Shown here one piece after another: positions 13,518-51,542 of a stretch of 58,757 nucleotides of DNA. The stretch is from positions 1-58,757 of the forward strand of contig NIVC01004129.1 in assembly GCA_002269645.1 (NCBI GenBank), given 5' to 3'. This stretch comes from Macrostomum lignano. Its lineage: Eukaryota. Within the stretch, counting starts at the first letter, position 1; every line of letters starts with the position of its first letter. The notes below the pieces were generated by a model. That model was given only the letters and a program-made list of their open reading frames with translations. It was not told the origin of the DNA and did not search any database. The position numbers were made by a program, and so were the translations under genes.

Positions 13518-13519
13518 AC

Positions 13520-16500
13520 AGCTCGACGGCCGGCAACACCAGCAGCCTGCTCCTCATCCCGGATGTGCCGAGGCGCCGAGGTCAGCATTTTCCCCGTCGC
13601 CGGTTCCGACGCCCGCCTGCACTCGCCAGGCCTGCCGCTTTTCGCAGCCAACGGCAGCCTCATCCGAACCTTCGGCACCCGCCAGCTCACGTTGGACCTC
13701 GGCATCCGGCGCTGCTCCTGGCCGTTCCTTCTGGCCGAGGTCTCCCGCCCGCTGATCCGCGCCGACTTTCTGCGGCACCACGGCCTGCTGGTGGACCTGC
13801 CGCACCGGCGCCTCCTGGACGCCCGCTCGCTCGCCAGCGTGCACCTGCTGGACGGCGCGGGGCCCGGACTGCAACTCGCCGCAGCCGCCACCGCGGACCC
13901 GTACAGCCAGCTGCTGGCCGAGTTCCCCGCCCTCACCGAGCCCAGTTTCCAGCGGGCTGCGCCACGGCACGGGGTGGAGCACCACATCCCGACGCAGGGC
14001 CCGCCGGTCCATGCCCGCCCTCGCCGCCTGCCGCCGGACAAGCTGGCGGTGGCCAAGGAGGAGTTTCGGCTCCTGGAGCAACTCGGCATCGTTCGCCGGT
14101 CCAACAGCCCTTGGTCCTCGCCGTTGCATATGGTCCCAAAAGCCTCCGGTGGCTGGCGGCCCTGCGGCGATTTCAGGCGGCTCAACGACGCCACGGTGCC
14201 CGACCGCTACCCGGTGCCGCACATCCAGGACTTCTCAGTGCGCCTAGCCGGCTGCTCGGTTTTCTCCAAGATCGACTTGGTTCGTGGCTACCACCAGGTG
14301 CCCGTGGCTGCAGCCGACGTGCCCAAGACCGCCGTCACCACCCCGTTCGGCCTCTTCGAGTTCCTGCGAATGCCATTCGGTCTCAAGAACGCCGCCCAGG
14401 CCTTCCAGCGGTTGGTGGACTCCGTCTGCCAAGACCTGGACTTTGTCTTCGCCTACATCGACGACTTCCTGGTCGCTAGCCACAGCCCACAAGAGCACCT
14501 GGAGCACCTGCGGACGCTTTTCCAGCGCCTGGCGGACAACGGTCTGATCATCAATCCGGCCAAGTGCGAGTTCGGCTGCAGCGAGATCGACTTCCTCGGC
14601 CACCGGATCAGCGCCCAGGGAGCCGTGCCGCTGCCCGCCAAAGTCGACGCCATCGCCAGATTCGCACCGCCAGCCACCGTCAAGGGCCTGCAGGAGTTCG
14701 CCGGCATGGTGAATTTCTACCACCGCTTCGTGCCGCGCGCCGCCCAGCTGCTGCGCCCCATCCATGCGGCCATGGCCGGCAAAGAGAAGTTCGTCCGGTG
14801 GACGCCCGAGCTGACCGCCGCTTTCGATGGAGCGAAGCGGGCGCTGGCCTCCGCCGCCATGCTGGCGCACCCGCGGCCAGACGCGCCCATCGCCCTCACC
14901 GTCTACGCCTCCGATACAGCGGTCGGGGCAGCGCTCGAGCAGCGGGTTGGCAGCGCCTGGCAGCCGCTCGCCTTCTTCAGCCGGCAGCTGCGCTCGCCCG
15001 AGCAGAAGTACAGCGCGTTCGACCGCGAGCTGCTCGCCCTGTACCTGGCGGTCCGGCACTTCCGCTATTTCCTGGAGGGCCGCGCATTCACCGCTTTCAC
15101 GGACCACAAGCCGCTGGTCGCCGCCATGTCCAAGATGTCCGACCCGTGGTCCGCCCGACAGCAGCGCCACCTGGCCTACCTGTCAGAGTTCACCACGGAC
15201 ATCCAGCACGTGGCGGGCAAGGACAACTCGGTCGCAGACGCTCTGTCCCGCTGCACGGTCTCTTCCGTGCAGCCCCGGCTGCTTCCCGGCGTGGATTTCG
15301 CGTCCATGGCCCAGGCGCAGGCGGCCGATACGGCCAGTCAGGCGGACGCCAGCCTCCAACTTGAGCCGCTGCAGCTCAGCCCCGGTGTCGCCCTGCTCTG
15401 CGACATCTCCACAGGCCGGCCGCGCCCGTTGGTGCCGAATTTCAGACGCCCCGTCTTCGACGCCATCCACGGCCTCGCCCACCCGTCCGTCCGCAGCACG
15501 CGGCGCCTCGTGGCCGCCAAATTCGTGTGGGCCGGCATGAACAAGGACGTTAGCCGGTGGGCCCGGTCCTGTGTCGCCTGCCAGACGGCCAAGGTGCACC
15601 GGCACGTCGCCGCCCCGGTTGGCAATATCCGCGTCCCGGACCAGCGCTTCGCCCACGTGCACGTCGACCTGGTGGGGCCGCTGCCGCCTTCGCAAGGCTT
15701 CACGCACCTGCTGACCATCGTGGACCGTTTCACCCGGTGGCCGGAGGCGATCCCGATGACCGACACCTCCGCGGCCGCGTGCGCCTCCGCCTTCATCGCC
15801 CACTGGATCGCCAGGTTTGGAGTGCCAAGCGACATCACCTCGGACCGCGGCTCGCAGTTCACGTCGCTGCTGTGGTCCAACGTCTCACGGCTCCTCGGAA
15901 TGCAGCTCCACCGGACAACGGCTTTCCATCCGCAGGCGAACGGGCTGGTCGAGCGTTTACACCGGCAGCTGAAGTCCTCCCTCATGACGCGACTGGCCGG
16001 ACCAGCCTGGGTCAGCGAGCTGCCCTGGGTGCTGCTTGGCATCCGGACGGCCCCCAAGGAGGACCTGCCGGCATCGTCGGCCGAGCTGGTCTACGGAGCG
16101 CCCCTCTGCGTGCCTGGCGAGTGCCTGCCGGCGACCACGAACAGTTCCTCGCCCGGCTCCGCGGCGCCGTCCAGGCATTCCGGCCGACGCCGACGTCCCG
16201 TCACGGCAGCCGCCCCACAGCTTGGCCGGCCGCCCTCGACGCCTGCCAGTTCGTTTTCGTCCGGCGCGACGGCCACCGCCTTCCGCTGCAGCGACCTTAC
16301 GACGGCCCGTTCAAGGTCCTCGAGCGGGACGCCAAAGCTTTCCTGCTGGACCTGGGCACTCGACGCGACCGAGTGTCAGTGGAGAGACTGAAGCCAGCCG
16401 TCATCGACGCGGTCGACCCGTTCCCGACGCCGGCCCTGCGACCGAGAGACCGCCCACTGCGGCTACCCGCTGAGCCGCCCCCAGCGCACTCTGCCGCCGA

Positions 16501-16620
16501 CCCCGCCTCTTCAGCTGGCGACATTGCGCCGGCGGCCCAACGCACTGCTGCTTTCCCCAGCCGCCAACTGCCACCTCGCCGGTGCCGTCCGAGCCCGGCG
16601 GCCTTGGCCGAATAGCTCGG
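13520..16620 (+). pseudogene. pol: Gypsy pol (protease, RT, RNase H, integrase), disrupted
   Basis: RT motifs [20 protein letters not shown] and YIDD; integrase HHCC and D,D,E ([21 protein letters not shown]). Protease D-T-G is missing at about 13570, RNase H shows V-Y-A-S in place of D-A-S at 14904, and there is a frameshift at about 16130. Confidence 0.92.
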
Positions 16621-16638
16621 TGCTGGGGGGGGGAGCTC

Positions 16639-16851
16639 TGTGGCGGCCAGACTGGTGCACGGTTGAGAGCGGGGCCCGCCTGTGCACAGGCCCCTGTGCG
16701 CCTGCCTGCTGGGGAGTTTTGCCCAGCCAGCCAGTTCGCTCTGACTCACACCTCCCTATTCTCTCAAGTATAAAGACTATGCTTAAACAAATATACACAA
16801 GATCTTTTGCTCGCTTGCTGCTTTTCAAGCTTCCATTCGCAAGCCGCTTCA
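16639..16851 (+). repeat. 3' LTR (213 bp)
   Basis: Direct repeat of the 5' LTR with an extra acggttgagagcggggc. Confidence 0.95.
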
Positions 16852-17959
16852 GCATTCTCAATGAGATATATGAGCATTCTCAATGAGATATATGAGCATT
16901 CTCAATGAGATATATGAGCATTCTCAATGAGATATATGAGCATTCTCAATGAGATATATGAGCATTCTCAAGGAGATATATGAGCATTCTCAATGAGATA
17001 TATGAGGATTCTCAATGAGATATATGAGCATTCTCAATGAGATATATGAGCATTCTCAATGAGATATATGAGCATTCTCAATGAGATATATGAGCATTCT
17101 CAATGAGATACATGTAGACGATTCTCAATGACATAGGAGGACGACTCTCAATAAATTAACGAAGACTAAAAGCAACTTTGGCATTACAAGTGCAGTTAAA
17201 GTTAGTTAATTGATATCAAATAAACGTTAACTAATGTTGTTGGCGCCAGTAGTATATTTTATCTTAAACATGGCAATAAATTTGATTTACTAATCAATAA
17301 AAAATTAGTACATACGGTACTAATGTAAACAAAAAAATAAGTTGTACGTAATAAAGTATCAAAAATGCAAGAAAAAATCAGCGCAAAAAACGAAGTAACG
17401 CTTGCCGAAAGTTTCATAAAAACGCTACTCGCTACTGTTACTAGCTGTATTGAGAAAATTAAAAAATTAATTTGTGCAAAAAAGATAAATAACTCAAGTC
17501 AAGAAAATACAGTATAAACAATTTAAATGATCACACTTGCATGCAACTCAGCAGTAAACAGAAAAGCACCTAAAGTACACAAAAGCAACAAAAACTGAGA
17601 TTTGGAGTTTGAAAACATTTAGAACGATCGAACCAACGAGCAGACACGCTAATCAAGACACATTGAAGACGGGAGGAGCCTCTGTACAAATATAGAGACA
17701 ATTTTAATCAATTTTACTTGTATATTTAAACCAAAAATATCAGAGTAACTAGATGTGTCACTCGCAATTGAAGTTGTGAAAAATTAAAGCGTCTATTCTT
17801 TATTCAGTAGTTTGTCTGCGCATTGTCAGTAGAATTTAACGTGCTAGCTAAAATTTTATTTCCTTCCTCGGGGTTTGTGACTTTAGGGATTAAGGAGCAT
17901 ATGGGGTTAAGAATGAACAACAAGCATTTAACTTGATGTACACAAGTGAACGCAAGACG

Positions 17960-19308: not shown

Positions 19309-20121
19309 TTAGGCCACGCCATCGCCCTCAGGCTTAGGCAGGGTGCTGTGATGTCGGTGCAGCCTCTTATTTCCTCGGCGTCGACTAACCGCCACCGGAG
19401 AAGCTGACTGCTGCTCGTCGCCGTCAACTTCGCCATCATCAGCAGAAGCAGCGTCATCATCATCAGCACTGCCCAGCAGCCCGGCGGCCTCCCCGCCAGT
19501 GTTCTCCACGCCGCCAGTCAACATCGTGGTGGCATCGGCAGCCGTCGTTGTCGCGTTAATTTCGTCGCCATCGTCATCGTCATTGTCGGCGTTGCCGTAT
19601 GGTTGTCGCCGACGACAACGACTTGACGAAGCCATGCGCCGGTGCTTGGCCAGGCTGGCAACCCGGCGACAGGCGATCATGAGCAGGAGGGCCAGGCCGA
19701 GAGCGCCGTTCAGCAGCCACACCAGCAGCAGCTGCGGCCGGTACAGAGAAGTCCTGTACACCTTGACCTCGGCCGTGGCGTTGGCGTCCGAGTCAGCCAG
19801 CAAGCACAGGTAAATGCCCGAATCGGACTCGGCCAGATTCCAGCCAATCAGGGTGCCGTTGGATGAGACAAAGTTCGAATTGTTGCAACTGTCGGGCAGG
19901 CGCCAGACCAGCTCGGACAGGGAGTGGCCGGCCGATTGCAGCGCCGCGGAGATGCGGCATTGAATGGTGAGGTTGGAACCGACCTGACGCGACTGCTGAA
20001 AGGGGATCGTCCTCAATGTTGGTTCCGGCTTGTCTGCATCGGCTGCCGATTGGCCAGTAGCATAGAGCAGCACTATGAGCAGTGGCTGGAGAACTAATTT
20101 GCTGATGAGACGGGCACTCAT
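19309..20121 (-). CDS. Type I membrane protein: signal peptide, single Ig domain, TM, acidic tail (270 aa)
   Basis: ATG at 20121. Ig motifs LTIQC, LVWRLP and DSGIYLC; TM LLLVWLLNGALGLALLLMIAC followed by basic RRVA..KHRR. Intronless CDS. Confidence 0.85.
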   Translation of the reverse strand: MSARLISKLVLQPLLIVLLYATGQSAADADKPEPTLRTIPFQQSRQVGSNLTIQCRISAALQSAGHSLSELVWRLPDSCNNSNFVSSNGTLIGWNLAESDSGIYLCLLADSDANATAEVKVYRTSLYRPQLLLVWLLNGALGLALLLMIACRRVASLAKHRRMASSSRCRRRQPYGNADNDDDDGDEINATTTAADATTMLTGGVENTGGEAAGLLGSADDDDAASADDGEVDGDEQQSASPVAVSRRRGNKRLHRHHSTLPKPEGDGVA

Positions 20122-20149
20122 TCGATAAGCATCTGCAGAATAGAGCAAT

Positions 20150-20848
20150 ATGTTTAGACGATATGTATCAAACGTAAAAATCTAGCCGATATGTATCGAA
20201 AGTAAGAATTTCGCCGATATGTATCGAAAGTAAGAACCTCGCCGAAATGTATCGAAAGTAAGAACCTCGTCGATATGTATTGAAAGTAAGAATCTAGCCG
20301 ATATGTTATCGAAAGTAAGAATCTAGCCGATATGTATCGAAAGTAAGAATCTAGCCGATATGTATCGAAAGTAAGAATCTAGCCGATATGTATCGAAAGT
20401 AAGAATCTCGCCAGAATGTATCGAAAGTAAGAATCTGGCCGATATGTTTCGAAAGTAAGAATCTAGCCGATATGTATCGAAAGTACCAATCCAGACCAAA
20501 GGTCGGCAAACTCCAGCCTGCGGGCCACATGCGCCTGCTCTATACTCGGCCCTCGGGTCCATTGAAACTTCACAATAGCAATCCGGCTCGCTTAGCGTTT
20601 GTGTCTCCCTCAGCTCTCTTTTCTTTTTTTTCTCCTTTCCTGCCTAATCTCTCCCATCTCTCCCCTCCTCTCCCACTTTCTCTCTCATCTCCCCTCTCAC
20701 TTCTCTCTTCTCTCTCTGGCCTGCAGTCATGCACTAGATTCTATATCCGGCCGAAGTTTGCCGAACCCTGATCTAGACGATATGTATCGAAAGTAACCAT
20801 TTAGACGATATGTATCGAAAGTAACCATTTAGCCGATATGTATCGAAA
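20150..20848 (+). repeat. About 28-bp minisatellite (gccgatatgtatcgaaagtaagaatcta)n, interrupted by a MITE
   Basis: Copies on both sides of 20497-20770; the unit contains the hairpin cgata-tg-tatcg. Confidence 0.92.
20497..20770. mobile_element. Non-autonomous hAT (Charlie-type) MITE, 274 bp
   Basis: Imperfect TIRs caaaggtcggcaaact / agtttgccgaaccctg; 8-bp TSD atccagac / atctagac; the first about 100 bp align with 34102-34210. Confidence 0.85.
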
Positions 20849-21444
20849 CAAACACTTAGCGGATGAAAGCGAATGACAATCTATATTAAAGTGTGGGAAA
20901 TTTCTGTTTAGCACTCGAAAAATTGTATGCACGCTGACACTAATTATGAAACCGAAATAAAAAATTAGGACTATTAATATCTGGTGCTAACATACGATAA
21001 AATTTGCGGTTTTATTCGTCTTAGCTCGTATCATCGTTGAAAGAAGCAGAAAACGCGTGTGTGGTTTCTGGTTAACAGAAAATTAAACTTGTGATCGATT
21101 ACTTATAGTACTACGAATTAAAATATTATAATCAAAATTTCAGTAAAAACAAATCTTTCTGATTGAAAAACTTTAATACAAAAATACAGTTAAGCTGCAA
21201 TAAAGTTTTAAGACAGCTTGTTAGGATTTTTTTACAAAAAATGTTCGAAGTTATAAATTTTGAGATTCAAAAATGCCAATTAAAGTGTTTAATACAAATA
21301 TCAGCTGATTTTCGAATCTCGTTAAAAGCTAAATATTTTCTTGAAACCATGGCAACATTTATGTACTTAATACAAAGACTCAATTACAACAGAAACGCAT
21401 TAAACTCTACAAAATGAAAATCTGTCTACGGATTCCTCTACGGG

Positions 21445-21521
21445 CGTCTGTCTGTCCGTCTGTCCGTCTGTCTACCTGTCTGCCTGTTTAGCGCATTGGT
21501 GTCTGTTTATCTGTCTTGTGC

Positions 21522-21560
<39 letters not shown>

Positions 21561-21577
21561 GTCTGTCTGTTTGTCTG

Positions 21578-21620
<43 letters not shown>

Positions 21621-21656
21621 ATGTCTGACTACTGTCTGTTTGTCTGTGTCTGTCTG

Positions 21657-21709
<53 letters not shown>

Positions 21710-21781
21710 GACTGTCTGTATGTCTGTCTGTCTGTCTGTCTGTCTGACTGTCTGTATGTCTGACTACTGTCTGTTTGTCTG

Positions 21782-21866
<85 letters not shown>

Positions 21867-21867
21867 T
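21445..21867 (+). repeat. (TCTG)n microsatellite
   Basis: Direct observation. Confidence 0.97.
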
Positions 21868-21945
21868 TCTAAAGCCAAAATGCAAATCAGGTCACCAACA
21901 CTGCCGCAGTCTCCAAGTCTAGATTAGATCAACAATCGCCCAGCA

Positions 21946-22437
21946 TCAGACAATAGCATTGGCTGCAGAGTGGCGAGTGAGGACCAGAGACAGAGTGCAC
22001 AGCACAGCCACAGCCACAGCCAGGCCGCCATCAATCGAGTAGATCACAGCTAGCATGGCGGCATAGCTGGGCATCTCGTACACCAGCACGTAGGCCGTAG
22101 CCGACAGTCCGCAGGCGGCCAGACTGCAATTATAATTGCCCGTATCCGACAGGCTGGCATTGGCGCACACCAGGCTGCCGTTTACAGACGAGATTCGACC
22201 GTTCAAACCGACTGGCGAGCCGCCCGGCGACAGCCACTGCAGCGAGCTGGCGGTGTAGTTTGCCGCGCAACCGGCTGACGGCAGGCTGCAGCTGACGGTG
22301 AACGGCCGGCCGACCTCAGCCGAGGTTTGCGCAGCCGACGGGGTCAGCGCTGGCGGCGCGGCGGCATCTTCGGCTGTCGCCAATGAGACGACGACGGTAA
22401 AGATGACGAGTAGATTGAGGAGAGTCTGGATAAGCAT
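21946..22437 (-). CDS. Type I membrane protein: signal peptide, single Ig domain, TM, very short tail (163 aa); paralog of 19309-20121
   Basis: ATG at 22437 (MLIQTLLNLLVIFTVVVSLATA). Ig motifs FTVSC, LQWLSP, SSVNGSL and DTGNYNC; TM MLAVIYSIDGGLAVAVAVLCTLSLVL. Confidence 0.85.
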   Translation of the reverse strand: MLIQTLLNLLVIFTVVVSLATAEDAAAPPALTPSAAQTSAEVGRPFTVSCSLPSAGCAANYTASSLQWLSPGGSPVGLNGRISSVNGSLVCANASLSDTGNYNCSLAACGLSATAYVLVYEMPSYAAMLAVIYSIDGGLAVAVAVLCTLSLVLTRHSAANAIV

Positions 22438-22509
22438 TTCCCGGCCTGGCTTTTGGAGTTGGGAGCGGCAGCTGAAGCTGGAATTTTGATTTTTGTGAAG
22501 GATCATTTT

Positions 22510-25013: not shown

Positions 25014-29820
<4,807 letters not shown>

Positions 29821-33299: not shown

Positions 33300-33845
33300 A
33301 TGTCTGTCTGCCTGTGTGTCTGTCTGCCTGTGTGTCTGTCTGTCTGCCTGTGTCTGTCTGTCTGCCTGTGTGTCTGTCTGTCTGCCTGTCTGCCTGTGTG
33401 TCTGCCTGTCTGCCTGTGTGTCTGCCTGTGTGTCTGCCTGCCTGCCTGCCTGTGTGTCTGTCTGTCTGCCTGTGTCTGTCTGTCTGTCTGTGTGTCTGTC
33501 TGCCTGTGTGTCTGTCTGCCTGTGTGTCTGTCTGTCTGTCTGCCTGTGTGTCTGTCTGTCTGTCTGCCTGTGTCTGTCTGCCTGCCTGCCTGCCTGTGTG
33601 TCTGTCTGTCTGCCTGTGTCTGTCTGTCTGTCTGTGTGTCTGTCTGCCTGTGTGTCTGTCTGCCTGTGTGTCTGTCTGTCTGTCTGCCTGTGTGTCTGTC
33701 TGTCTGTCTGCCTGTGTCTGTCTGCCTGCCTGCCTGCCTGCCTGTGTGTCTGTCTGTCTGCCTGTCTGCCTGTGTCTGTCTGTCTGCCTGCCTGCCTGCC
33801 TGTCTGTCTGTCTGCTTGTGTGTCTGTCTGTCTGCTTGTGTGTGT
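33300..33845 (+). repeat. Compound (TCTG/CCTG/TG)n microsatellite
   Basis: Direct observation. Confidence 0.96.
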
Positions 33846-36628: not shown

Positions 36629-38534
36629 CTAGCTGGGCTCCTCGGAATCGAAGTAGCGATCCTCCTCGTCCCGCTCAAACTCGCCGGACAAATCCAAGCC
36701 GTCGTCCCGGTCGACCTGGCCGTAGTCAAAGTACTCAACGTCCTTTCCGGCCAAGAAGCGACGCTGCATCAACGCCAAGAACTCCGAACGAAGCAGCTGA
36801 CGCTTGCGATCCGGCAGGAATCTGCCGCCGATGCCGCCGGCCTCATTATCACCATCATCCTCCTCCTCCTCCTCCTCGTTGTTCGATGAGTTGTCAGAAT
36901 CCGCTGCGGCCGCGGCTTCGTATCTACGGTTGGTAATTGGAATGGGGATTTCTATTCATTCAGAATGGGGATTTCTATTCATTCAGAATGGGGATTTCTA
37001 TTCATTCAGAATGGGGATTTCTATTCATTCAGAATGGGGATTTCTATTCATTCAGAATGGGGATGTCTATTCATTCAGAATGGGGATTTCTATTCATTCA
37101 GAATGGGGATTTCTATTCATTCAAAATGGGGATTTCTATTCAGTCAGAATGGGGATTTCTATTCAGTCAGAATGGGGATTTCTATTCATTCACAATGGGA
37201 TTTCTATTCATTCACAATGGGGATTTCTATTCAGTCAGAATGGGGATTTCTATTCAGTCAGAATGGGGATTTCTATTCAGTCAGAATGGGGATTTCTATT
37301 CATTCACAATGGGGATTTCTATTTATTCACAATGGGGATTTCTATTCATTCAGAATGGGGATTTCTATTCATTCAGAATGGGGATTTCTATTCATTCAGA
37401 ATGGGGATTTCTATTCATTCAGAATGGGGATGTCTATTCATTCAGAATGGGGATTTCTATTCATTCAGAATGGGGATTTCTATTCATTCAAAATGGGGAT
37501 TTCTATTTAGTCAGAATGGGGATTTCTATTCAGTCAGAATGGGGATTTCTATTCATTCACAATGGGGATTTCTATTCATTCACAATGGGGATTTCTATTC
37601 ATTCACAATGGGGATTTCTATTCAGTCAGAATGGGGATTTCTATTCAGTCACAATGGGGATTTCTATTCATTCACAATGGGGATTTCTATTCAGTCAGAA
37701 TGGGGATTTCTATTCAGTCAGAATGGGGATTTCTATTCATTCACAATGGGGATTTCTATTCATTCCGAATGGGGATTTCGATTCATTCAGAATGGGGATT
37801 TCGATTCATTCAGAATGGGGATTTCTATTCATTCAGAATGGGGATTTCTATTCAGTCAGAATGGGGATTTCGATTCATTAAGAATGGGGATTTCGATTCA
37901 GTCAGAATGGGGATTTCGATTCATTAAGAATGGGGATTTCGATTCATTCAGAATGGGGATTTCTATCCTCTATTTTTATGCTTTGGAAAAGGTTGAGACT
38001 GGCATCAGGTAAGGTATCTCAAACTCTAACAGCAGTAATCAACCCTAAATTATGAGAACTCAGCAACCCGAACCTGGAATTCTCCTCCAGCCGGACGCAG
38101 TGCTGAGTAAGGAAATGCGACATCACGCTCTCTCCGTCGCCTCCGGCAGCAGCAGCGGCGGCGGCGGCCGCTGAACTCTGCCGATGGACGTCCTCGCGGG
38201 TCAAGTACCGGCCGATGTACTTGTGATACAGGTAGGGCTCTCGGTTGCGCATGCTCTCGTCCGAGAAATACTCGCCCTCCGTTGCTAGGCGCTGCATCGC
38301 TTGGAATCGCCGATTGCGCAGGCGCTGCGTACGGCCTGTAGGCCGGCTGGAGCGGCAGCGGCGCCGCCATTCCGCCTCTGCATCCGGGTTTACATCCGGG
38401 TTCATATCCGGGTTTACATCCGGGTTCATATTCGGGTTCATATCCGAATTTACATCCGGGTTTACATCCGGGTTCAGTTCCGCTTCAATACCAGCGGAAG
38501 CTGAGTCGCAGGCAAAAGTTTTCTCAATTTCCAT
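36629..38534 (-). CDS. CCDC97: CCDC97 (DUF2052) ortholog, at least 251 aa, 2 exons identified
   Basis: Exons 38534-38074 and 36923-36629 (phase 2). Motifs RLRNRRFQAMQRL..GEYFSDESMRNREPYLYHKYIGRYL and LRSEFLALMQRRFLAGKD.EYFDY..VD.D..LD......RDEEDRYFDSEEP match remembered CCDC97 motifs. A further 5' exon is possible. Confidence 0.9.
36937..37965 (+). repeat. 23-bp minisatellite (cagaatggggatttctattcatt)n in CCDC97 intron
   Basis: About 44 copies starting about 15 nt from the 3' splice site. Confidence 0.97.
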
Positions 38535-39254: not shown

Positions 39255-39550
39255 AGTTCAGATGGGACTGGGGCTACTCAGATTGGACTGGGGCTACTCA
39301 GATTGGACTGGGGCTACTCAGATGGGACTGGGGCTACTCAGATGGGACTGGGGCTACTCAGATGGGACTGAGGCTACTCAGATTGGACTGGGGCTACTCA
39401 GATTGGACTGGGGCTACTCAGATGGGACTGAGGCTACTCAGATGGGACTGGGGCTACTCAGATGGGACTGAGGCTACTCAGATGGGACTGAGGCAACTCA
39501 GATGGGACTGGGGCTACTCAGATGGGACTGGGGCTACTCAGATGGGACTT
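39255..39550 (-). repeat. 20-bp minisatellite, reverse complement of the 26808-27222 unit
   Basis: (gatgggactggggctactca)n, about 14 copies. Confidence 0.95.
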
Positions 39551-39778: not shown

Positions 39779-42700
39779 TCAAAACCGACGATCGTAAAAC
39801 TGACGCGATTGGATGCCGCCGAAGCCACCGTATGCGCCGCTGCCGCCCCGACCGCCGCGGCTACCGCTGACGCCGCCTCCCCGCTGCGTCGGGGAAGGCG
39901 GCGACCGAAATCTCGCCGCGCCGACGTTTCCATTCATTCTCGAAGCTGTTGTTGAAGTGGACGCCGGCCGCTGCTGTTGAAACGGCCTTGGCGGCGGCCG
40001 GTTCGATGGCAGGCGATTCGAATATGGCAGCGGCGGCGGCGGCGGCGGCGGCCCGTTTCTGCTACTATTATTATTACTAAGATTAGCAATGCTACGATTT
40101 GATGAAGCCGGGTGCGGATGCTGCCTGGCAAATAGCGCCGATCTATTATTAAGCAACGTCGCCGGAGGTCGCTGCGGTGGAGGTGGCGGCGGCGGCGGCG
40201 GCGGCGGCGGTGACGGCGACGGCGGGGACGCCGAAAGCTTCTTGGGCGGCGGCGGCAGGCTGCTGGGGTGCGGCAGAGGGTTGACTCGGCGACTAGCGGA
40301 ATTGATGTTCGTAGAAGAGGGCGGCGCCATCCGGCGCATGTCGACATCCTGATTGGAAGAAGCTGCTGACGCCGACGACAGCGAAAGAGGCTGATGCCAG
40401 CGTTCGTCAACGTCGCCGAGAGAGCCATCGTGGCAGTGCCGCGGCCTCCGCCACAATGACTCCTCAGGATTAATCGAATCGTCTTCAAGATCTATCGAAG
40501 TCCGTTTAATCGTTCGCTTGGCTGGCTGCTCAACCAGCTGATCGAACGGCACGGACTCAGCATTCCGCTGAAATGGTAAAGCAGATCGTCGCTCATCGAT
40601 GTCGGTTTCAGCAACAGTCGAACAAGGAGGCGATGCAGCCTGCGGCGGAGATGGCGAAGCCGGCGCTTCCAGCAGGCGCAGCGGAGGCGGCGTCGAAGGA
40701 GGCGACGGAGACATTGGCGCGGGTTGCGTCGGGTCTCTGGCTGTCGCAGCTGCCGCTATCAGCGACTCGGGAGGCGGCAGAATCGAAGCGACCTTCTGCG
40801 GCACTGTCGCCGATTGAGGCGGCTGCGGAGGCGGCGACGATGTCGTCTGAGGAGAAGCCGGCGACGTTAAATCGTTCAGCTTGAGCAGTCTCTGCCGTTC
40901 GACATTATCTCTTAGATTGCTAATCTGTTGCTTTAACTTGCTGATAAACTGTTGAGTCTGCTGTTTCTGCTGTTGCAGTGGAGGCGGCGGAGGCTGCGAA
41001 GGAAGAGGTCGGGGCCGTTTCCGGTCGTCAATGTCGGCAGAATCAGGGGTAAAACGACGTTTTATTGAAGAGGTCGACGCATTGCCGGTGCCAGCGCTAG
41101 CAGAAGCAGCAGCAGAAGCAGCAGCAGAAGCAGCAGCAGAAGCAGCAGCAGAAGCAGCAGCAGCAGTAGCAGGGGCAGCAGGTTTTGGATCCGGCAGAAC
41201 AGGCAGATCCAACAGCAGATTGTCGTGATAAGAGATCGGCGATTGGCAGGCATTATCGACATTATTATCCTTGCTCTCCTCGCCGCTATAGGCGTCAACA
41301 TCGTCATCTGGCGAGTCGGGCGGCTCGTCGAACACCAGCTTGTCGGGCGGCGGAAGAGACGGATCATCGTCATCATTAACATTCGCCGGAGGAGGCGTCG
41401 GGCTGTGGATAGCTTCTATCGGCGATCGCCGCCGCTGCTCATCGACTGAGTTGTCGTCGGTTGGCTTCAGATTCGATGTCGACGGTTTCGGCAGCAGCTC
41501 CTTCAGCGGCAGATAGACCAGGCCGGGCATGCCGACCCGGGCTTGCAGATCGCGACGCTGTCCGGCGGCCTGCCTGGCCAGGTGGCCGATCCGATCGGCC
41601 GCTGTCGAATAGGTTGCATAGCAACCGCGCCGATCCGAGCGGCACTCTGCAGCCCAGTAGGCGCCGACGCCGCCGTGCGGCTGCGGCAGCCGGTGCCACT
41701 GGTCCAGACGGCTGTAGTCGAAGAAGCAGTCGGATCTGGGCAGCGGCAGCCACACAATGACGTGCAGCTGATGCCTGCCCGGGTCAGACAGTTTCCTGGC
41801 CAGCCGGCCGAGGTTAAGCCGCTCGGCTGGCCGGCTGTCCGAGGGCACTAGGTAGCACAGGGGCAGGCGGCCGTCCCGTCCGCTGCTGGCCGAAGTTAGC
41901 GGGCAGAGAAGGGCCCGGCGGCTCAGCACTAACTGATTGCACAGTCGAGCCAGCGGATGCGTGCTGTCGGGAGTGGCCAGACCGACCAGGTAGCTCACGT
42001 GACCGGCTGCTGCTGCTGCTGCTGAGGATTCGGAGTCGATGGGGCCGGCCGCCGCGGTGACTTCTCGAGATCCACGAATTTTGAAACCGGACAGGCTGGA
42101 CAGCAGATCGTCGAATTCGATGAAGCGGACCTGGGGGGGGGGGGGGGGAACGGCGAGCCGTAGTAACGATTCCATTAGTGGGGATGAAGGGGGCTGGAGA
42201 TCTTACCGTTAAGGGGCATGCGACCTCTCCAGTTCTATGAGGGGGCATGCGACCTCTCCAATCTCTATGAGGGGTCATGCGACCTCTCCAATCCCTATGA
42301 GGGGTCATGCGACCTCTCCAATCCCTATGAGGGGGCATGCGACCTCTCCAATCTCTATGAGGGGTCATGCGACCTCTCCAATATCTATGAGGAAGCATGC
42401 GACCTCTCCAGTTCTATGAGGGGGCATGCGACCTCTCCAATCTCTATGAGGGGTCATGCGACCTCTCCAATCCCTATGAGGGGGCATGCGACCTCTCCAA
42501 TCTCTATGAGGGGTCATGCGACCTCTCCAATCCCTATGAGGGGTCATGCGACCTCTCCAATCCCTATGAGGGGGCATGCGACCTCTCCAATCTCTATGAG
42601 GGGTCATGCGACCTCTCCAATATCTATGAGGAAGCATGCGACCTCTCCAGTTCTATGAGGGGGCATGCGACCTCTCCAATCTCTATGAGGGGTCATGCGA

Positions 42701-45700
42701 CCTCTCCAATCCCTATGAGGGGGCATGCGACCTCTCCAATCTCTATGAGGGGTCATGCGACCTCTCCAATCCCTATGAGGGGGCATGCGACCTCTCCGAT
42801 CTCTATGAGGGGTCATGCGACCTCTCCAATCCCTATGAGGGGGCATGCGACCTCTCCAGTCCTCCCTATGAGAGGGGATTCGACCTCTTGAGTCCTATGG
42901 CCGGGGGACATGCGACCTCTTGAGTCCTATGGGGGACATGCGACCTCTTGAGTCATATGACCTCTTATGGTCCTTTAGGGGGGTCATGTAGTTTTTATTA
43001 TAAAGAAAGACCTTCCCATGGTCTCTCAGGGGGGCATGCGACCTCGAGCGGTGCTAGTAGCCACACACACCTGCAAATTGCCGCCATCCTGCTGCAGACA
43101 GGGGAACACAAACGGCACAGCTTCCAGCGATACCAAATCCAGGTAGAGGCTGGCCAAGCCGGGCAGCTCGAGGCCCAGGCTGAGCTGGCCAACCAGGGTG
43201 CCGCCGCCTGGCCGGCTGGCAACAAACGGCAAACGACCGGGACCCGAAGGCCGGCTGGGCTGATGAAGCATGCCGGATTTCAATCGGTCAACTTGATTTG
43301 GATAGTTGGCTGATGAAGCTGACTGCTGCTGCATCAAGTCCGGCTTTGATTGCTGCGCCTGTTGCTGCTGCTGCTGCTGCTGGGAGGCGACAATCCGGCC
43401 GGAGAATTCGTAGCGCACAGCGGCTACCGGCACGGCCTGGCGAGGCCGGTCGAGCAAATCAAAATCCTCAGAGTATTCGAATAGGAATACCTGCGCAAAG
43501 GTTCGAGTGCAAGTAAATGTGTAGGCGAGCATGCCTTTTAACCGCTGCCGCAGGACTGATTGGGTGGACAAACAGTGTCCCACTGGTCTGCATTAATGAC
43601 TACTAGCTTGTCCACCCAATGACCCACTAGATTGTCCACCCAATGACCCACTAGCTTGTCCACCCAATGACCCACTAGCTTGTCCACCCAATGACCAACT
43701 AGCTTGTCTACCCAATGACCCACTAGCTTGTCTACCCAATGACCCACTAGCTTGTCTACCCAATGACCCACTAGCTTGTCTACCCAATGACCCACTAGCT
43801 TGCCCACCCAATGACCCAGTAGCTTGTCCACACAATGACCCACTAGTTTGCCCACCCAATGACCCACTAGCTTGTCCACCCAATGACCCACTAGCTTGTC
43901 CACCCAATGACCCACTAGCTTGTCCACCCAATGACCCAGTAGCTTGTCCACCCAATGACCCACTAGCTTGCCCACACAATGACCCACTAGCTTGTCCACC
44001 CAATGACCTACTAGCTTGTCCACCCAATGACCCACTAGCTTGTCCACCCAATGACCCACTAGCTTGTCCACACAATGACCCACTAGCTTGTCCACCCAAT
44101 GACCCACTAGCTTGTCCACCTAATGACCCACTAGCTTGCCCACACAATGACCCACTAGCTTGCCCACTTAATGACCCAGTAGCTTGTCCATCCAATGACC
44201 CACTAGCTTGTCCATCCAATGACCCACTAGCTTGTCCACCCAATGACCCACTAGCTAAGTAAAAACCCGACCTGGCTCGAATGAAAGGCATCAGGCAGCG
44301 GCAACTGCTCCAGACCGTCGGCCCGGCCTCGCCGACTAACGTGACAGTCGAACTGGGGCTGCGGCTCGGCCACGCTGTCCCCCTCGGCCCAGCGGCAGAC
44401 GCGGCAGCGAAGGTAGCGCAGCACCAGCAGCCAGCCGGCCGGTTGCAGGCCGCGTTTCGGGCAGGTGCGATCGACGTATTGGCACAGGCTGACGCCGGAT
44501 TCACCCGTTGCTAGGCGACTATCCGGCAGGTTGCCCTTAGCAACGCCGCGTTCGGCTATAGCCCGAGCCTCGGCTTCGGTCGCCACGGCCAGATAAGCGA
44601 GCTGCTCCGTTGGACCAGAAGTCGAAGCAGCCGCAGCGCCGGTCCCTGCCGAATCGTCGCTGGCCGTTTCCATGGTAACGGGGCCGCCAGCGCCGGAAAA
44701 CATGGCGGCTTCCGCTTCGGCGGCTGCGGCAGCTTCGCGCATTTCTGCTCGTTTGGCTCGGTACTGCGGAGAGCGGCGGATATGATCGACTCTCAATTTG
44801 GCATCGACTTAAGGAAACAAGTCTGAATGTTCTTCAACTTACATGCCTTTAACATTCACATTCCCCAATCTTCACATTCCCCAACCTTCAAATTCCCCAA
44901 CCTTCACATTCCCCAACCTTTACATTCCCTAATCTTCACATTTCCCAATTTTCACATTCCCCAACCTTCACATTCCCCAACCTTTACATTCCCCAATCTT
45001 CACATTCCCCAATCTTCACATTCCCCAACCTTCACATTCCCTAACCTTCACATTCCCTAACCTTCACATTCTCCAACCTATACATTGCCCAACCTTCACA
45101 TTCCCCAACCTTCATTCTGCAACCTACACATTCTCTAACTTTCTCATTTCTCACCCTTCACATTCTCCACCCTTCACATTCCCCAACCTTCACATTCCCC
45201 AACCTTCACATTCCCCAACCTTCACATTCCCCAACCTTCATATTCCCTAAGCCGCCTAACCATAGGGGATTTTGAAGTTGTGGGATTGCAGAGGAGACTG
45301 CATTAAAACAGATGGGAAATATAAAGCGCCAAGCCCAGTGCATATAATGTTCCCAAAATGAAGTCATCATTGCTGAAAGGATTTGACTAACTTCTTCATT
45401 GAGCGCGTAGTTTTCAATCATGAAGGCCTCCTGCACGCGAAACTGCCGCTCCTGCTCCCGGCTGAGGAAGCTGGCGCGCAGCTGGCGCTCGATCTCGGTC
45501 TTGAACTCCTTGGAGTCGGGGCTGACGCGGCGGAGAATCTCTATGGGGGAAGGGTATTTTGGCGGTGTGTTGATGAGCAGTGGAACTGAAGGTTTGAAGC
45601 GGTTGAGGCCCGGAAAATACGAGCTATAAATCTACAAGGGTAGCGGTGACCGAGCAACTGGGGATCTGGGAAGGTGGCCGAGCAGCTGACACACTGGGAG

Positions 45701-46581
45701 GCTGGCACAGCAACTAACACTCTGTGAGGCTGGCCCAGCAACTGACACTCTGGGAGGCTGGCCCAGCAACTGACACTCTGGGAGGCTGGCCTAGCAACCG
45801 GGGATCTGGGAGGCTGGTACAGCAACTGAGGATCTGGGAGGCTGGCCCAGCAACTGAGGATCTGGGAGGCTGGCTGAGCAACTGAGGATCTGAGAGGCTG
45901 GCCCAGCAACTAAGGATCTGGGAGGCTGGCCCAGCAACTGAGGATCTGAGAGGCTGGCACAGCAACTGAGGATCTGGGAGGCTGGCTGAGCAACTGAGGA
46001 TCTGGGAGGTTGGCCCAGCAACTGAGGATCTGAGAGGCTGGCACAGCAACTGAGGATCTGGGAGGCTGGCTGAGCAACTGAGGATCTGGGAGGCTGGCCC
46101 AGCAACTGAGGATCTGAGAGGCTGGCACAGCAACTGAGGATCTGGGAGGCTGGCTGAGCAACTGAGGATCTGGGAGGCTGGCCCAGCAACTGAGGATCTG
46201 GGAGGCTGGCACAGCAACTGAGGATCTGGGAGGCTGGCTGAGCAACTGAGGATCTGGGAGGCTGGCCCAGCAACTGAGGATCTGGGAGGCTGGCCCAGCA
46301 ACTGAGGATATGGGAGGGTCGCGGTAGCCCTTTTCTCTCACGACTGTTTATCTTTCTCATTTCGAAATGAAGATCAAATTCAAACTATTGATTGAAGTTC
46401 ATTAATTTGAGATTTAAAGAAACTTAGCACACACTCCAAGCTCCCCATCCCGCTCACCTGCCGGATTTTGCACCCGCTTGGGAACGCGTAGCGCCTTCAG
46501 CACAGAGAAGTCGACAATCTTCTCGGCAGCCTCAAACGGCACCTCCTCTGCTCCGCGTTTCGAAGGATGCTTCTGCATCAT
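39779..46581 (-). CDS. TASOR: TASOR/FAM208-like protein (DUF3715 pseudo-PARP, SPOC-like domain, long disordered tail), about 1196 aa, 5 exons
   Basis: Exons 46581-46458, 45540-45392, 44763-44272, 43544-43071 and 42130-39779 (GT-AG, phases 1,0,0,0; 3591 nt open). Motifs LRVPKR, VSPDSKEFKTEIERQLRASFL, AFMIENYALNEEYRAKRAEM, EQLAYL, GVSLCQYVD, PQPQFDCHVSR and AQVFLFEY...RPRQAVPVAAVRY follow the remembered DUF3715 order. The start codon is tentative. Confidence 0.8.
42210..42950 (+). repeat. 30-bp minisatellite (atgcgacctctccaatctctatgaggggtc)n in TASOR-like intron 4
   Basis: About 23 copies with higher-order periodicity. Confidence 0.96.
43600..44255 (+). repeat. 24-bp minisatellite (cactagcttgtccacccaatgacc)n in TASOR-like intron 3
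   Basis: About 27 copies. Confidence 0.96.
44845..45250 (+). repeat. 16-bp minisatellite (ccccaaccttcacatt)n in TASOR-like intron 2
   Basis: About 24 variant copies. Confidence 0.93.
45650..46312 (+). repeat. 28-bp minisatellite (ggctggcccagcaactgaggatctggga)n in TASOR-like intron 1
   Basis: About 23 copies; same family as 27658-27957. Confidence 0.95.
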
Positions 46582-47477
46582 AGACAGCAGGTCGATGGAC
46601 CGCTGGATGCCCTACTGCTGCTGCTGCTGCTGCTGGCAAACATCTTCAACCAATAGCCAGATGTTGCAGTCGTTTAACTAATAAAAAACTACAAAAAGCT
46701 TATCTTCCTACTCATATGCAAATCGTTTAGTAATAAGAATCGATCGTTAACAACAACCTTATCTTTAAATGTCGAGTCACATTTTAATCTGCAAATAAAT
46801 TAATGAAAAGGTTAACTAAAACAGACGGGGTAAACGGCGCGAGTAACTATACCTGAATTTGTATTTTAGAATACATCGTCATCTGATTAGGGCCTAACGT
46901 ACTAAGCTTTATAAATAAAAAGCCGTTTAAAAAATAAAAAACTGAAGACAGCTGAAGAGTGCACAAATTTTGCCAAAGATGTTTGTTAAATTTGCATTTA
47001 ATAAATAAAAGAACATGCCGATTGATTGACGCGCCTTCACAAAACAGTCGGTCAACAGATTGCAAACTATAGAAAACTACTACTAGTAGGAGACGAAGAA
47101 TATTGTAAGCTATTTTGCATCGCAGCACGCTAAACAAGCAGGATTATAGAAGGCCTACTACACTATATGGCCAGATTCAATATTTGGTAAATAAGAATAG
47201 TAGGCAGTAGCTTATATGCATAAAGATACTATTAAAAGAAATTCTACTCGTCTATTATATTAATTATTTTACTACTAAAGTGCGAGTAGTAAGAGCAGTC
47301 CAAAGAATAATATGACAATGGAATTTAGCTAATTTTAACGCTCACCGAGATACACCATGAGTACAATACTAGATTATAGCTTAATTACCTGTTGCTGCTT
47401 TGCTTCACTGGCAAATTTTAACAGGTACAGTTTTCATATACCTTCATTCCACAAATGAGTGGGAGATAAGGGAGGAG

Positions 47478-47871: not shown

Positions 47872-50800
47872 TCACTCCGAACAGTCGGTAAGCAGTTCCA
47901 CAATGACCGGCTCCAGCCAGTCGCCGCGCATCAGAACTTTACAACCGATAGCCTTAGCAAACCTGCGCAGTCCGTCAGCCCTGAGCCCGGCCTCGGCCTG
48001 GCTAAATCTGTACAGCTCGCCCGGCTGGCCAAGGTGCAAGCGGAGCCGGTACCAGAACAGCGCCTCCATTAGGGCCGTGCACACCAGCTGACAGCTCAGG
48101 GCATCGCGCGGTGCCCGCCTGACCAGGGCTTCGTAGCCGCCGCCGCCGCTGGACACGAAGGCGAACCAATCGCGGCAGTGGAACAGAGCGTCTAGCAGGC
48201 GACGGATGCTGTGATAGGCGGCCACGTGTTTCTCCGTGATCTGGCGGCAGCGAGGGTTGGGGAGATGCTGGCTTGAAAATGCATTCCAGTGAATAAGAAG
48301 AGATCACCTACTACTGAGTAGACCCGACAAAAACGGCACCCCAGAAGCTTGCTTGCATCGCCCCAGAATCGTTTCACAGTCGTTACAGGTAACACAGGTA
48401 AAACAGAAAAGAAGTGACTCCAGACGATTCTAAAACGACAAAATGTCACCCAGACGGAGCTTCTGGACCTTCAACAGGTGGCACCAGCCACCCTGCTGCG
48501 AATTAGTCTAGTTCCGCTAATCAAGCCTCCACAGTGGGCAAATCTCAACTGCTGGACATCCTCAACTCGTAGTCTTTTAAGCATTCTCATCCCCTTTGTA
48601 GTTCGACGGGCGGAAAAATGGCTTGGTATTCCTACTGTTAATATTGAAATGCTATCAGTTAAGTTCTAATCTTTAACTTTCACCGTTGTATATCGATGGG
48701 TTTTACTACTAATCCTATTAACCGCCGCTGCCCCTCTAGTCCTACATCGATTGCGTCATCTCAAAGTTCTCACCGCGGCCACGTGACTCGGCCGCAGCTC
48801 CAGCGGCTCCCTGTGGCAGCGCAGCAGAGCGGTCAAATAATCGCGCTTAAAATCGCGGAAGATTCCAACACGACGGCAGTGCTTATCGAAGCTGGCTTCG
48901 GTCCAGCTCGTCACCAGGGCGATGTTCTTCAGGCTGGTCTCCAGGCTGGGCTCCAGCGCGATCTCCGAGGCCACCGTCCGCAGCTGCTCCAGCGCGGTGA
49001 ACACTGAGCGCAGATACGGCACGCTCAGCTTAGACCGTCTATCGCTGACAATGCGCTCAATGACGCCTGACCAGAACTGGTTCAAGCCGGTCCTCAGCAC
49101 CGTCACGCCGCCGGACTCGTCGGCGCTATTATTGGCGCCGTCCCGACTGTCTGTCAGGAATTCAACAACGGCTTGGGACAGCAGGTTGGCGGAGAAGGCG
49201 TTCCAGCCGTTGAATGCAAAACGGCTGGCCCACATGTCCAGGGCGCCGATCAGCGAGGCCTCGTCCGGGTTCAGCGAATCCGCATTGCGACGAGCTTTGC
49301 CGTTGTTGCCGTCTCCGGCCGCCGGTTTCGACTTCGGCAGGTCCTCCGCCGTTGAACTTTTCGTTGACGAAATTGGCAAAGTTGGCGGCGGCGGAGGCGG
49401 CGGCGGCGGCCGGTGGACGCTGAACTCCAGCAGGCTGTAGCGCTGGCCAAGGCGCCAGTCAATTCGACAGTCGGCAAAAGCGGCCGACGTCAACGAAGCT
49501 TCCGGCGGAGTGGCGTCGGCGACGATCTCGGCATCCAGTCGGACAGTGTAGGCTGGCGGGCTTGGCTTTTGCCCGGACACTGCGGCCAGGCAGACACGGC
49601 GCAGATTGGCTTCGTCAAGGAGGCCGGACGAGCCACTGCCGGCAGTCAGCAGCTGCTGTCGGAGTGCCGATTCCGATGGCCAGCTGCTGGCGCCTGCAGC
49701 GGCAGCGGCGCTCTTGGCAGCGGCGCCTCGTCTTCGAGTCTTTGTTGGCGACACGTTGCCGCCGCTGCAGCCGGCGCCACCGAGAACGCCGAGCTCGACG
49801 GCAGAATTGACGCAGGCAACGCCGAGCGGCCATTCGACGGTGCCGCGGCATCGAGCTAGCATGTCGTCGATTTGACGTCGAAGTTTCGACGCACTGGCGG
49901 CATCAGCGTTAGCTGACGACGAAACTAGTTCAGCGACAAGCCGGCTGATAGCGGCGCGGCCGTGGCGAGCCCAGGCCACGGGCGGCTGGCCGCGATACTT
50001 CAGCAGCTCCTCGCTATCAACTTTAGGCAGCTGGTCGTCTGGCGGCAGCGGCAGACTGTCGTCCGGGTCGTTTAGCAGCCAACGGGCCAGAGGATCGGGC
50101 TTTGGCTGAGGAGTCAGCGGCTCAAGCAGGCACTCGGCGATGGCGTCCAGAGCCGGGCGAAGCTGCTCTGCCGAGTTGAAGGCCTCGGCCAAGGCTCGGG
50201 CGTCGTCTAGACGTCGACGAATACTAGCGGCCGAGGCGATCTGGCGACGCGGATGCGGGGTCAGGTGCAGGATGACGAGGCATTCGATAAGGGCGGCGGC
50301 CAGGGCGGGCCGCGCGTAGGCGATGGCGGCGGCTTTGGCGGCGGCCTCCGCTTCGGCGGCCGCCTTGGCAGAGGCTTCCGCTTCCGGGTCGGGCTTGACC
50401 GCTTCCGTCTCGGCATTGTCGGCAGCCGAATTGTCAGCCTCGGCCTCGCCCTCCGCCATTGACGATTTCTCAGCCTCGGCTGGAGCGGCAGCGGCCGCAG
50501 CGGCCACGGCTGCCGCCCTCTGTTTGGCCAGCTCCCGAGGCAAATTATCCAGAGCCGATCGGATCCGATCGATAGCTTGATCGAGGCGCCATACCGATTC
50601 GTTATTGTCGCCGACATCGTCTTTGCCCTCGGCGTCGGCTTTGCCAGCGTCGGCGTCCAAATCGGTGAGCAGACAAGCAGCGATAGCGTCGCGAACGACG
50701 GCTACAACGTTGAACGGCAGTTGTACAGTCGGAAAGGTCGGAAGTTCGAGCTTCTGCTCGGTTAGTCGGACTAGCTGAGACAGCATCGGCTGGGACAGGC

Positions 50801-51542
50801 CGGCTTCGCTGGACCAATCGGCGGTCTGGCAGATGCTTGAGAACAGCTGCTGAGGGGGCAGCTGCTCCGCCAGGCTGGCCAGGTTGCCGGCCAGCTGGGC
50901 GGCGGACTCGGCCAGCTGGAAGCCGAAGCCGCTGGCCAGCCGGTTAACTTCGGCGAGGGCGTCGCCAACCTGACGAAGCGACGGCATGCGCGGATTGGCA
51001 GCGTCGAGCCGCTGCACCGGCAGGTGGCGCACGTAAAGGCGGAGCAGGCGGCTGAAGCAGGCGGACAGCAGGTCGACGGCGGCTTCGGCGACTGCGGATG
51101 CAGCGTCGCTCTCTTCGGCCAGACAGTCGGCCAGGCAGCATTCCAAACGGTCGGATCCGGCTGCCAAGAATCGGACAAAAGCGTCCGGTCGGGCGATGAG
51201 TCGGACAGCGTCGGCGCTGAAATCGGACAGGCGGGCCTTCAGGCCGGCCAGCTGCTCAGAGTCGGCGTCCGACGGTTCAAGGAGCTCCAAGAAGGCCCGG
51301 TCAGTTGGCGGCCTGGGCGACGAGGATGTCAACAACAGTTTCATGCGTTTAGCCGGCGTCGCGCTGTCTCCGTTTTGACTAGCCTGAGTCTTGGTTTCCC
51401 CATCGGAGTCTTTGTTTGAGTCGGCCTTGCGCTTCTGGCCGGCGGTGGCAGCGGCGGCCGCGGCAGTGGCCGATGTCGTCTCGTCCGGCTTGGTGCTGGC
51501 GGCTTCCGCGCCAGTCATGCTTTCGTCTGTTGGTTCGGACAT
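47872..51542 (-). CDS. Uncharacterised, mostly helical, probably nuclear protein (928-aa ORF; about 1054 aa with a putative second exon)
   Basis: Long ORF 51542-48756 with ATG in good context and NLS-like KRKA and PAKRMK. Donor GTGAGA after 48774 can splice in phase 0 to the acceptor at 48268-48270, adding exon 48267-47872. No family recognised. Confidence 0.75.

Follow-up and report, generated by a model that had tools for sequence, protein, structure and literature searches.

A likely TASOR-like pseudo-PARP gene in the flatworm Macrostomum lignano

TASOR scaffolds HUSH, a vertebrate complex that silences transposons. HUSH silencing requires the DUF3715 (RDTS) pseudo-PARP domain, and the domains of TASOR and TEX15 can replace each other (PMC10578480). 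TASOR-like proteins have been reported throughout Metazoa, invertebrates included, and TEX15 has been reported as vertebrate-specific (Schopp et al. 2023, PMC10578480). In TASOR, mutation of Tyr305 abolishes deposition of trimethylated histone H3 lysine 9 (H3K9me3) (Douse et al. 2020, PMC7532188). We found no test in the literature of transposon silencing by an RDTS pseudo-PARP outside vertebrates. Here we analyze a TASOR-like gene in a stretch of Macrostomum lignano DNA (contig NIVC01004129.1 of assembly GCA_002269645.1, positions 1 to 58,757; the window, 58,757 nt in all). Our combined findings suggest, with a probability of roughly 0.7, that an intact, spliced gene for a protein lies at this locus and that it is a flatworm representative of the TASOR-like DUF3715/RDTS pseudo-PARP branch.

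The locus lies on the minus strand, where scripted splicing joined five exons through canonical GT...AG sites at all four introns:

46458–46581, minus strand: exon 1, 124 nt, with the ATG at 46581 and the donor CAG/GTGAGC in phase 1
45392–45540, minus strand: exon 2, 149 nt, N-terminal helices of the pseudo-PARP domain, EILRRVSPDSKEF...ENYALNEE
44272–44763, minus strand: exon 3, 492 nt, the DUF3715 core with an Ala-rich insertion (aa 101–142)
43071–43490, minus strand: exon 4, 420 nt, the last PARP strands, a polyglutamine linker and the first post-PARP strands
39779–42130, minus strand: exon 5, 2352 nt including the stop, the remaining post-PARP module, a helical stretch and the tail

Together these exons form a coding sequence of 3537 nt with an open frame of 1178 aa, and an in-frame TAG lies 13 codons 5' of the ATG. 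The original prediction, made from the letters of the stretch, had proposed five in-frame exons and a product of about 1196 aa; the exons stand, whereas the length does not, probably due to a slightly different choice of boundaries. The exon 2 product aligns with residues 5–59 of the TASOR chain in structure 6TL1. Exon 3 supplies the residues at the PARP His and Tyr positions (Leu149 and Ser183) and a family-invariant His232, and exon 4 carries Tyr261, the counterpart of TASOR Tyr305, the RPR loop and the polyglutamine linker (aa 290–340). A conserved helical stretch (aa 531–608) is followed in exon 5 by a disordered tail of 570 aa.

Two of the junctions are read by public protein models. The exon 1/2 junction is read identically by UniProt A0A1I8GLY0 (P0002), which ends exactly at the exon 2 donor, as does a second model, P0004. 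At the exon 4/5 junction, A0A1I8I998 (P0003, found in an exhaustive search) is 100% identical to the window on either side of intron 4 (43271–43101 and 42130–41561) and uses the same acceptor, with a donor that lies 2 nt away, following a difference of one base in a run of C. Support for the exon 2/3 and 3/4 junctions comes from conserved family motifs: splicing restores, free of gaps, the motifs L-x3-[FY]-x2-KR-x-E-M-[KR] and AF-x-[ST]-Q-x-[YF]-x-[YF]-E-Y, respectively. Overall, the exons of the window are 99–100% identical to M. lignano UniProt fragment models, in agreement with the flatworm-like source that had been guessed for this DNA. The public annotation of the locus is fragmentary, with exons 1–2 fused to the upstream gene under the name "CULLIN_2 domain-containing protein" (A0A1I8GLY0) and exons 4–5 present as an "uncharacterized" fragment. 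Exon 3, with the DUF3715 core, is in none of the public protein models that we retrieved. The immediate value of the locus is thus in annotation, as a full-length and better-modeled TASOR-like gene that includes this core.

The first four exons encode the domain that places the protein in its family:

43389–46542, minus strand: pseudo-PARP (DUF3715/RDTS) domain, aa 14–289, coding span over exons 1–4

Pfam reported a sole family, DUF3715 (PF12509), at aa 148–276, scoring 32.9 bits (gathering cut-off 28.5; E 7.9e-8). The top sequence match in the PDB (phmmer) was the TASOR pseudo-PARP domain 6TL1 (E 1.2e-8). The same structure was the top Foldseek match (E 5.5e-17; template-modeling score 0.85; root-mean-square deviation 2.1 Å; 24% identity), with active PARPs at about 1e-8. 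The AlphaFold model entered in Foldseek was built with a family alignment of 51 sequences, and its predicted local distance difference test score (pLDDT) is above 90 over the PARP part. We searched 1.84 billion representatives exhaustively with phmmer, using a 497-aa construct from which low-complexity loops had been removed. The construct matched 166 proteins at E ≤0.001 (41 at E ≤1e-10), about 150 of them through the PARP part; these are metazoan DUF3715 proteins. The matches include proteins from Lingula, Capitella, Tubulanus, Owenia, Mizuhopecten, Saccoglossus, Branchiostoma and Acanthaster, TASOR from lamprey, hagfish and fish, and trematode proteins (Schistosoma, Opisthorchis, Calicophoron and Heterobilharzia) that UniProt names "TASOR pseudo-PARP domain-containing protein". 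Two word-indexed homology searches gave M. lignano proteins only, because low-complexity words filled the candidate list.

We used the alignment with 6TL1 to find the M. lignano counterparts of the TASOR residues that Douse et al. 2020 (PMC7532188) describe. The PARP His position (L184 in TASOR) is Leu149 and the Tyr position (Y217 in TASOR) is Ser183, confirming the LAYL and GVSL readings of the original prediction at these two sites. By analogy, the Glu position of the H-Y-E triad falls in the hydrophobic VFLF strand, to no single residue of which it was assigned. TASOR Tyr305 is kept as Tyr261 along with the RPR loop, and TASOR Tyr295 is replaced by Phe251. Across the extended beta8-beta9 loop, FEY(261)SEDFDLLDRPRQ aligns with FYEY(305)GFDELRRRPRH of TASOR, and residues E260, Y261, P271 and P276 are conserved in the family. 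With Leu149 in place of His and Ser183 in place of Tyr, the PARP-fold domain is predicted to be unable to bind NAD+.

The position of the protein within the family was assessed with a neighbor-joining tree of 46 PARP domains. The TASOR-like protein groups with an M. lignano paralogue, A0A1I8H023 (bootstrap 92%), these two with a short protein, P0007, whose PARP domain is the nearest outside Macrostomum (70%), and all three with four trematode proteins (89%). This flatworm clade adjoins a large clade that holds vertebrate TASOR together with TASOR-like proteins that bear SPOC. Two Pfam-confirmed TEX15 proteins, with about 45 bits in the phmmer search, are placed elsewhere in the tree. The TEX15 domain (PF15326) was not found by Pfam in the 1178-aa protein and was found in the controls P0095 and P0098. 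A TEX15 orthologue was therefore rejected on both domain content and clade. TEX15, a factor in piRNA-directed methylation, shares the DUF3715/RDTS domain with the M. lignano protein but differs in its TEX15 domain, clade and degree of similarity, and by these sequence comparisons the gene belongs to the TASOR-like lineage and not to TEX15. The assignment to a TASOR-like DUF3715 pseudo-PARP, as originally predicted, is thus borne out by the Pfam score above the gathering threshold, by 6TL1 as the top match in sequence and Foldseek searches, by the loss of the His and Tyr residues and by the lack of a TEX15 domain. Its novelty had been overstated: TASOR-like proteins of invertebrates and pseudo-PARP proteins of flatworms were recorded before, and in UniProt the paralogue from M. 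lignano already bears the name "DUF3715 domain-containing protein". The M. lignano gene leaves the present view of the TASOR family as it was.

The best non-flatworm matches (80–90 bits) are invertebrate TASOR-like proteins, among them those of Lingula (XP_013408776), Saccoglossus (XP_006818571) and Branchiostoma (XP_035677781), whose pseudo-PARP domains are 29–33% identical to that of M. lignano. Common to them and the M. lignano protein are the loss of catalytic residues and a folded module after the PARP domain. Unlike theirs, however, the M. lignano module is not recognized by the SPOC-DomI profile described below, and the M. lignano protein is much shorter (1178 versus 1200–3800 aa) and ends in a disordered RGG tail. 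Trematode relatives in the same clade (Schistosoma mekongi A0AAE2D1N1, Opisthorchis viverrini A0A074ZVA5 and Calicophoron daubneyi A0AAV2TUV6) carry a SPOC-like half about 450 residues past the PARP domain that is more recognizable than in M. lignano. Compared with vertebrate TASOR, the fold is the same, Leu occupies the His position in both, and Tyr305 and the RPR loop are kept, whereas the Tyr217 that remains in TASOR is Ser in M. lignano, and neither DomI nor the Periphilin-binding helix nor DomII/PIN is detectable in the M. lignano protein. The paralogue is 40% identical over the PARP and post-PARP modules but lacks both the RGG tail and minisatellites in its introns.

The paralogue gene (A0A1I8H023 / PAA47320.1; NIVC01004496.1, 6949–11015) is more compact. 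Its tandem repeats (30-bp units, 9699–10159) are coding and yield a PVSA/PDPQVSA-rich tail, and the C-terminus is not the same in its two public protein versions.

The region that follows the pseudo-PARP domain is harder to place:

41726–43223, minus strand: beta-rich post-PARP module, aa 345–530, a candidate diverged SPOC domain; the span includes intron 4

We built an iterated SPOC-DomI hidden Markov model (HMM; 365 positions), seeded from the region past the PARP domain of hagfish TASOR. In 92 of 156 family members it recognized SPOC-DomI straight behind the pseudo-PARP domain. For the M. lignano protein, the weaker comparisons converge on one segment, DSTHPLARLCNQLVLSRRALLCPLT, in one register, and the SPOC profile comparisons (P ~0.002–0.03) always fall on the LARLCNQLVLSRRALL segment. 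A profile-profile alignment (hhalign) to TASOR SPOC gave P 0.03. In a separate hhalign test the score was 21.5 against 13.2 ± 2.3 for column shuffles, of which 1 in 200 reached it. A half-SPOC HMM that includes trematode sequences matched the M. lignano protein (P 0.0016) and the paralogue (P 0.013) in one register. With the TASOR SPOC profile, the clade's trematode members gave E 3.6e-5 (probability 71%); a SPOC domain was therefore present in the flatworm lineage. The direct hhalign comparison of trematode and Macrostomum post-PARP regions was not significant (P 0.14–0.21), with the short comparison picking the expected segment. In a global MAFFT alignment a strand-helix-strand-strand pattern was aligned, with LCYLVPS opposite FLFLLSS and LHVIVW opposite LQALFVF. 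Both AlphaFold runs placed the same strands and helices in the module; the first, from a two-sequence alignment, had a mean pLDDT of 30.6 and was unusable. From these comparisons the post-PARP module is likely a diverged SPOC domain, although the signal is weak. The strings GQLSL, LARLCNQLVLSRRALL and CYLVP, which the original prediction had quoted from a SPOC-like segment, are present in the module as quoted, and the weak profile signal speaks for that segment, whereas the SPOC-DomI HMM and Pfam SPOC do not.

Several points weigh against reading the locus as an intact TASOR-like gene. With filters on, the iterated SPOC-DomI HMM matched neither the M. lignano protein, up to an E of 10, nor the paralogue. 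Pfam SPOC did not match the 1178-aa protein, and hmmsearch with the TASOR SPOC-DomI HMM and filters off gave 0.6 bits (P 0.013) on the segment DSTHPLARLCNQLVLSRRALLCPLT, below ordinary significance. Past the short SPOC segment this HMM matched nothing, leaving the MPP8-binding DomI undetected, so that the formation of a HUSH-like complex is not to be taken for granted. Nor was a counterpart of the Periphilin-binding region of TASOR detectable in aa 609–1178. The second AlphaFold alignment laid TASOR SPOC sequences over the post-PARP region, where the first strands have a pLDDT of 50–60; the fold modeled there is therefore not independent evidence. The 50 best Foldseek matches to the whole model are all PARP structures. 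The public models derive from copies that differ by single-base indels, and the M. lignano genome holds near-identical duplicates (PMC5730564). In addition, we found no functional data in the literature on any invertebrate TASOR-like protein.

The strongest of the alternatives, though an unlikely one, is that the DUF3715 protein carries a flatworm-specific post-PARP fold unrelated to SPOC and has a role other than a HUSH-like one, for example as an RNA-binding or chromatin adaptor that reuses the pseudo-PARP. Such a fold would be consistent with the post-PARP region matching M. lignano proteins only among the 1.84 billion representatives, with a Macrostomum post-PARP HMM that found nothing outside Macrostomum, with PDB sequence searches that gave chance-level matches only and with the failure of the SPOC-DomI HMM and Pfam SPOC to match. 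It is also consistent with the lack of detectable DomI, DomII and PIN domains and with the many family members in which no SPOC is detectable. Nonetheless, three profile comparisons (P 0.0016 to 0.21) pick the same segment and register; two of them, with TASOR-family profiles, have P 0.002–0.03, and the third, with the trematode profile (P 0.21), is not significant alone. Moreover, trematode members of the clade keep a recognizable half-SPOC, the module occupies the position of SPOC in the relatives, and the critical tyrosine of the PARP loop is conserved, all of which weighs against this alternative.

Beyond the module and the helical stretch, aa 609–1178 are disordered, with 19% Pro and 14% Ser. 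Neither a Pfam match nor, by Pfam and PDB sequence searches, a DomII/PIN domain was found in this part, and PDB sequence matches in the tail and post-PARP searches were at chance level only (SH3-linker peptides, Sin3b). A Pro/Ser-rich tail without a PIN domain is what had been predicted from the start. Apart from a Q-rich helix (aa 782–816), two motifs were read in the tail:

41006–41062, minus strand: bipartite nuclear localization signal-like motif KRRFTPDSADIDDRKRPRP, aa 752–770
39815–39883, minus strand: C-terminal RGG box RGGGVSGSRGGRGGSGAYGGFGG, aa 1145–1167

Judging from their sequences, KRRFTPDSADIDDRKRPRP may serve as a bipartite nuclear localization signal and RGGGVSGSRGGRGGSGAYGGFGG may bind RNA.

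By analogy with TASOR we infer a HUSH-like function. The product would, by homology, be a nuclear scaffold for co-transcriptional, RNA-directed transposon repression. Its pseudo-PARP domain, which keeps Tyr261 as the counterpart of the tyrosine required in TASOR, would be the essential effector of silencing, as has been shown for TASOR. Partners would dock on the SPOC-like module, and through its low-complexity RGG tail the protein would bind nascent RNA or associate with itself. A more radical version, which we regard as a long shot, is that flatworm TASOR-like proteins are a compact, single-polypeptide HUSH. The pseudo-PARP and diverged SPOC would be fused to an Arg/Gly/aromatic-rich tail that does the RNA-binding and self-association job of Periphilin, and silencing would be directed by nascent transcripts without MPP8 or Periphilin. 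The RGG tail, however, is specific to the gene in the window, and the sister gene lacks it. RNA interference and transgenesis are established in M. lignano (PMC5730564), and a correct full-length model therefore makes a silencing test practical.

The protein may instead act downstream of nuclear PIWI-piRNA complexes, like TEX15 in the mouse germline, and not sense intronless transcripts autonomously in the manner of HUSH. In flatworms, stem cells and germline depend heavily on PIWI proteins, and neither an MPP8-binding DomI nor a Periphilin-binding region is detectable in the M. lignano protein, both in favor of such a role. So is the functional interchangeability of the TEX15 and TASOR DUF3715 domains (PMC10578480). 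However, the protein has no TEX15 domain, its PARP part is closer to TASOR-like proteins (80–90 bits) than to TEX15 (~45 bits) and lies apart from TEX15 in the tree, and nothing in its sequence ties it to PIWI. We thus consider a PIWI-coupled role improbable.

That the locus is a non-functional duplicate, a decaying paralogue in a partly duplicated genome, is more doubtful still. Blocks duplicated at ≥95% identity add up to 180 Mb of the assembly (PMC5730564), and public models of sister copies carry single-base indels near two of the junctions. Those indels, however, fall in homopolymer runs, as is typical when an assembly is in error, and are absent from the window, where the coding sequence is open over all five exons, the GT-AG sites are intact and the family motifs are conserved. 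As for an active mono- or poly-ADP-ribosyl transferase, the PARP fold is present, but with the His and Tyr of the triad replaced by Leu149 and Ser183 an active enzyme is excluded, and in E-value the best structural match, the NAD-free TASOR domain, is ahead of active PARPs by nine orders of magnitude.

Each of the four introns contains one tandem array (Tandem Repeats Finder), as had been predicted, and the arrays fill 63–85% of their introns:

45653–46317: intron 1 minisatellite, 28-bp unit × 23.8, 73% of intron 45541–46457
44851–45247: intron 2 minisatellite, 16-bp unit × 24.9, 63% of intron 44764–45391
43595–44256: intron 3 minisatellite, 24-bp unit × 27.6, 85% of intron 43491–44271
42212–42948: intron 4 minisatellite, 30-bp unit × 24.5 with a 239-bp higher-order period, 78% of intron 42131–43070

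Because the introns are filled by these arrays, a six-frame list of open reading frames (ORFs) consists of fragments and repeat-derived pseudo-ORFs. The whole 58.8-kb window holds 30 tandem arrays with periods of 4–77 bp, covering 30.6% of it, about double the 15% that has been published for simple and tandem repeats over the whole Mlig_3_7 assembly (PMC5730564). We therefore ruled out minisatellite introns as a special property of the TASOR-like gene: they are ordinary for the M. lignano genome, where the arrays, from their sequences, appear to be spread as dispersed families across separate loci. The introns of the paralogue contain no minisatellite arrays. The description of the gene as hidden by minisatellite introns thus fails as a trait of the gene and holds for its annotation, since the fragmentary public gene models of the locus seem to be due to the minisatellites in its introns.

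Two similarities between arrays were seen in the window. The 28-bp unit of intron 1 (45653–46317) is ~93% identical to a 29-bp unit at 27656–27954, inside a wolframin-like gene. The 20-bp unit at 39258–39549, just 3' of the TASOR-like stop, matches the unit at 26807–27227 exactly, in reverse complement.

On its 5' side the TASOR-like gene is preceded by another gene on the same strand:

46643–46644, minus strand: splice acceptor ttgaag/ATGTTT, 62 nt 5' of the TASOR-like ATG, a candidate spliced-leader trans-splice site
47872–51542, minus strand: upstream gene, with a 928-aa ORF (48756–51542) and an exon at 47872–48225

The upstream gene has no Pfam match. Both A0A1I8GLY0 (P0002) and P0004 join its last exon to the acceptor at 46643, with P0002 reading ...DWLEP/MFASSSS...; in the window a TAG closes this fusion frame. 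For M. lignano, both trans-splicing and precursor transcripts that span several genes have been described (PMC5730564). Both genes may be transcribed into a single precursor that spliced-leader trans-splicing then separates, with the acceptor at 46643 as its putative site.

Further genes and repeats were recognized elsewhere in the window:

38019–38534, minus strand: ORF with a CCDC97-like C-terminal domain (Pfam PF09747, E 3.7e-19), directly 3' of the TASOR-like gene
25014–29820, minus strand: exons of the wolframin-like gene, with the Pfam WC-rich and WCOB domains in ORF 25014–25841
19309–22506, minus strand: two ORFs with immunoglobulin-domain matches
12343–17230: Ty3/gypsy-type element, with an intact 942-aa pol ORF at 13563–16391 (plus strand)

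The CCDC97-like ORF holds a coding 12/24/36-bp repeat (PDVNPDMN...). The wolframin-like gene has multi-pass membrane-like ORFs upstream and minisatellites in its introns too. Between the two immunoglobulin-type ORFs lies a (GTCT)n microsatellite (21446–21870), and similar tetranucleotide runs occur at 25787–25989 and 33301–33834. The pol ORF encodes reverse transcriptase, RNase H, an integrase zinc finger and the integrase core. It lies in a stretch of 68% GC, with arrays of one 22-bp unit (TTCTCAATGAGATATATGAGCA) on both flanks, ~4.4 kb apart. These arrays are probably inside long terminal repeats, and the element is likely a young retrotransposon, 23 kb from the putative silencing gene.

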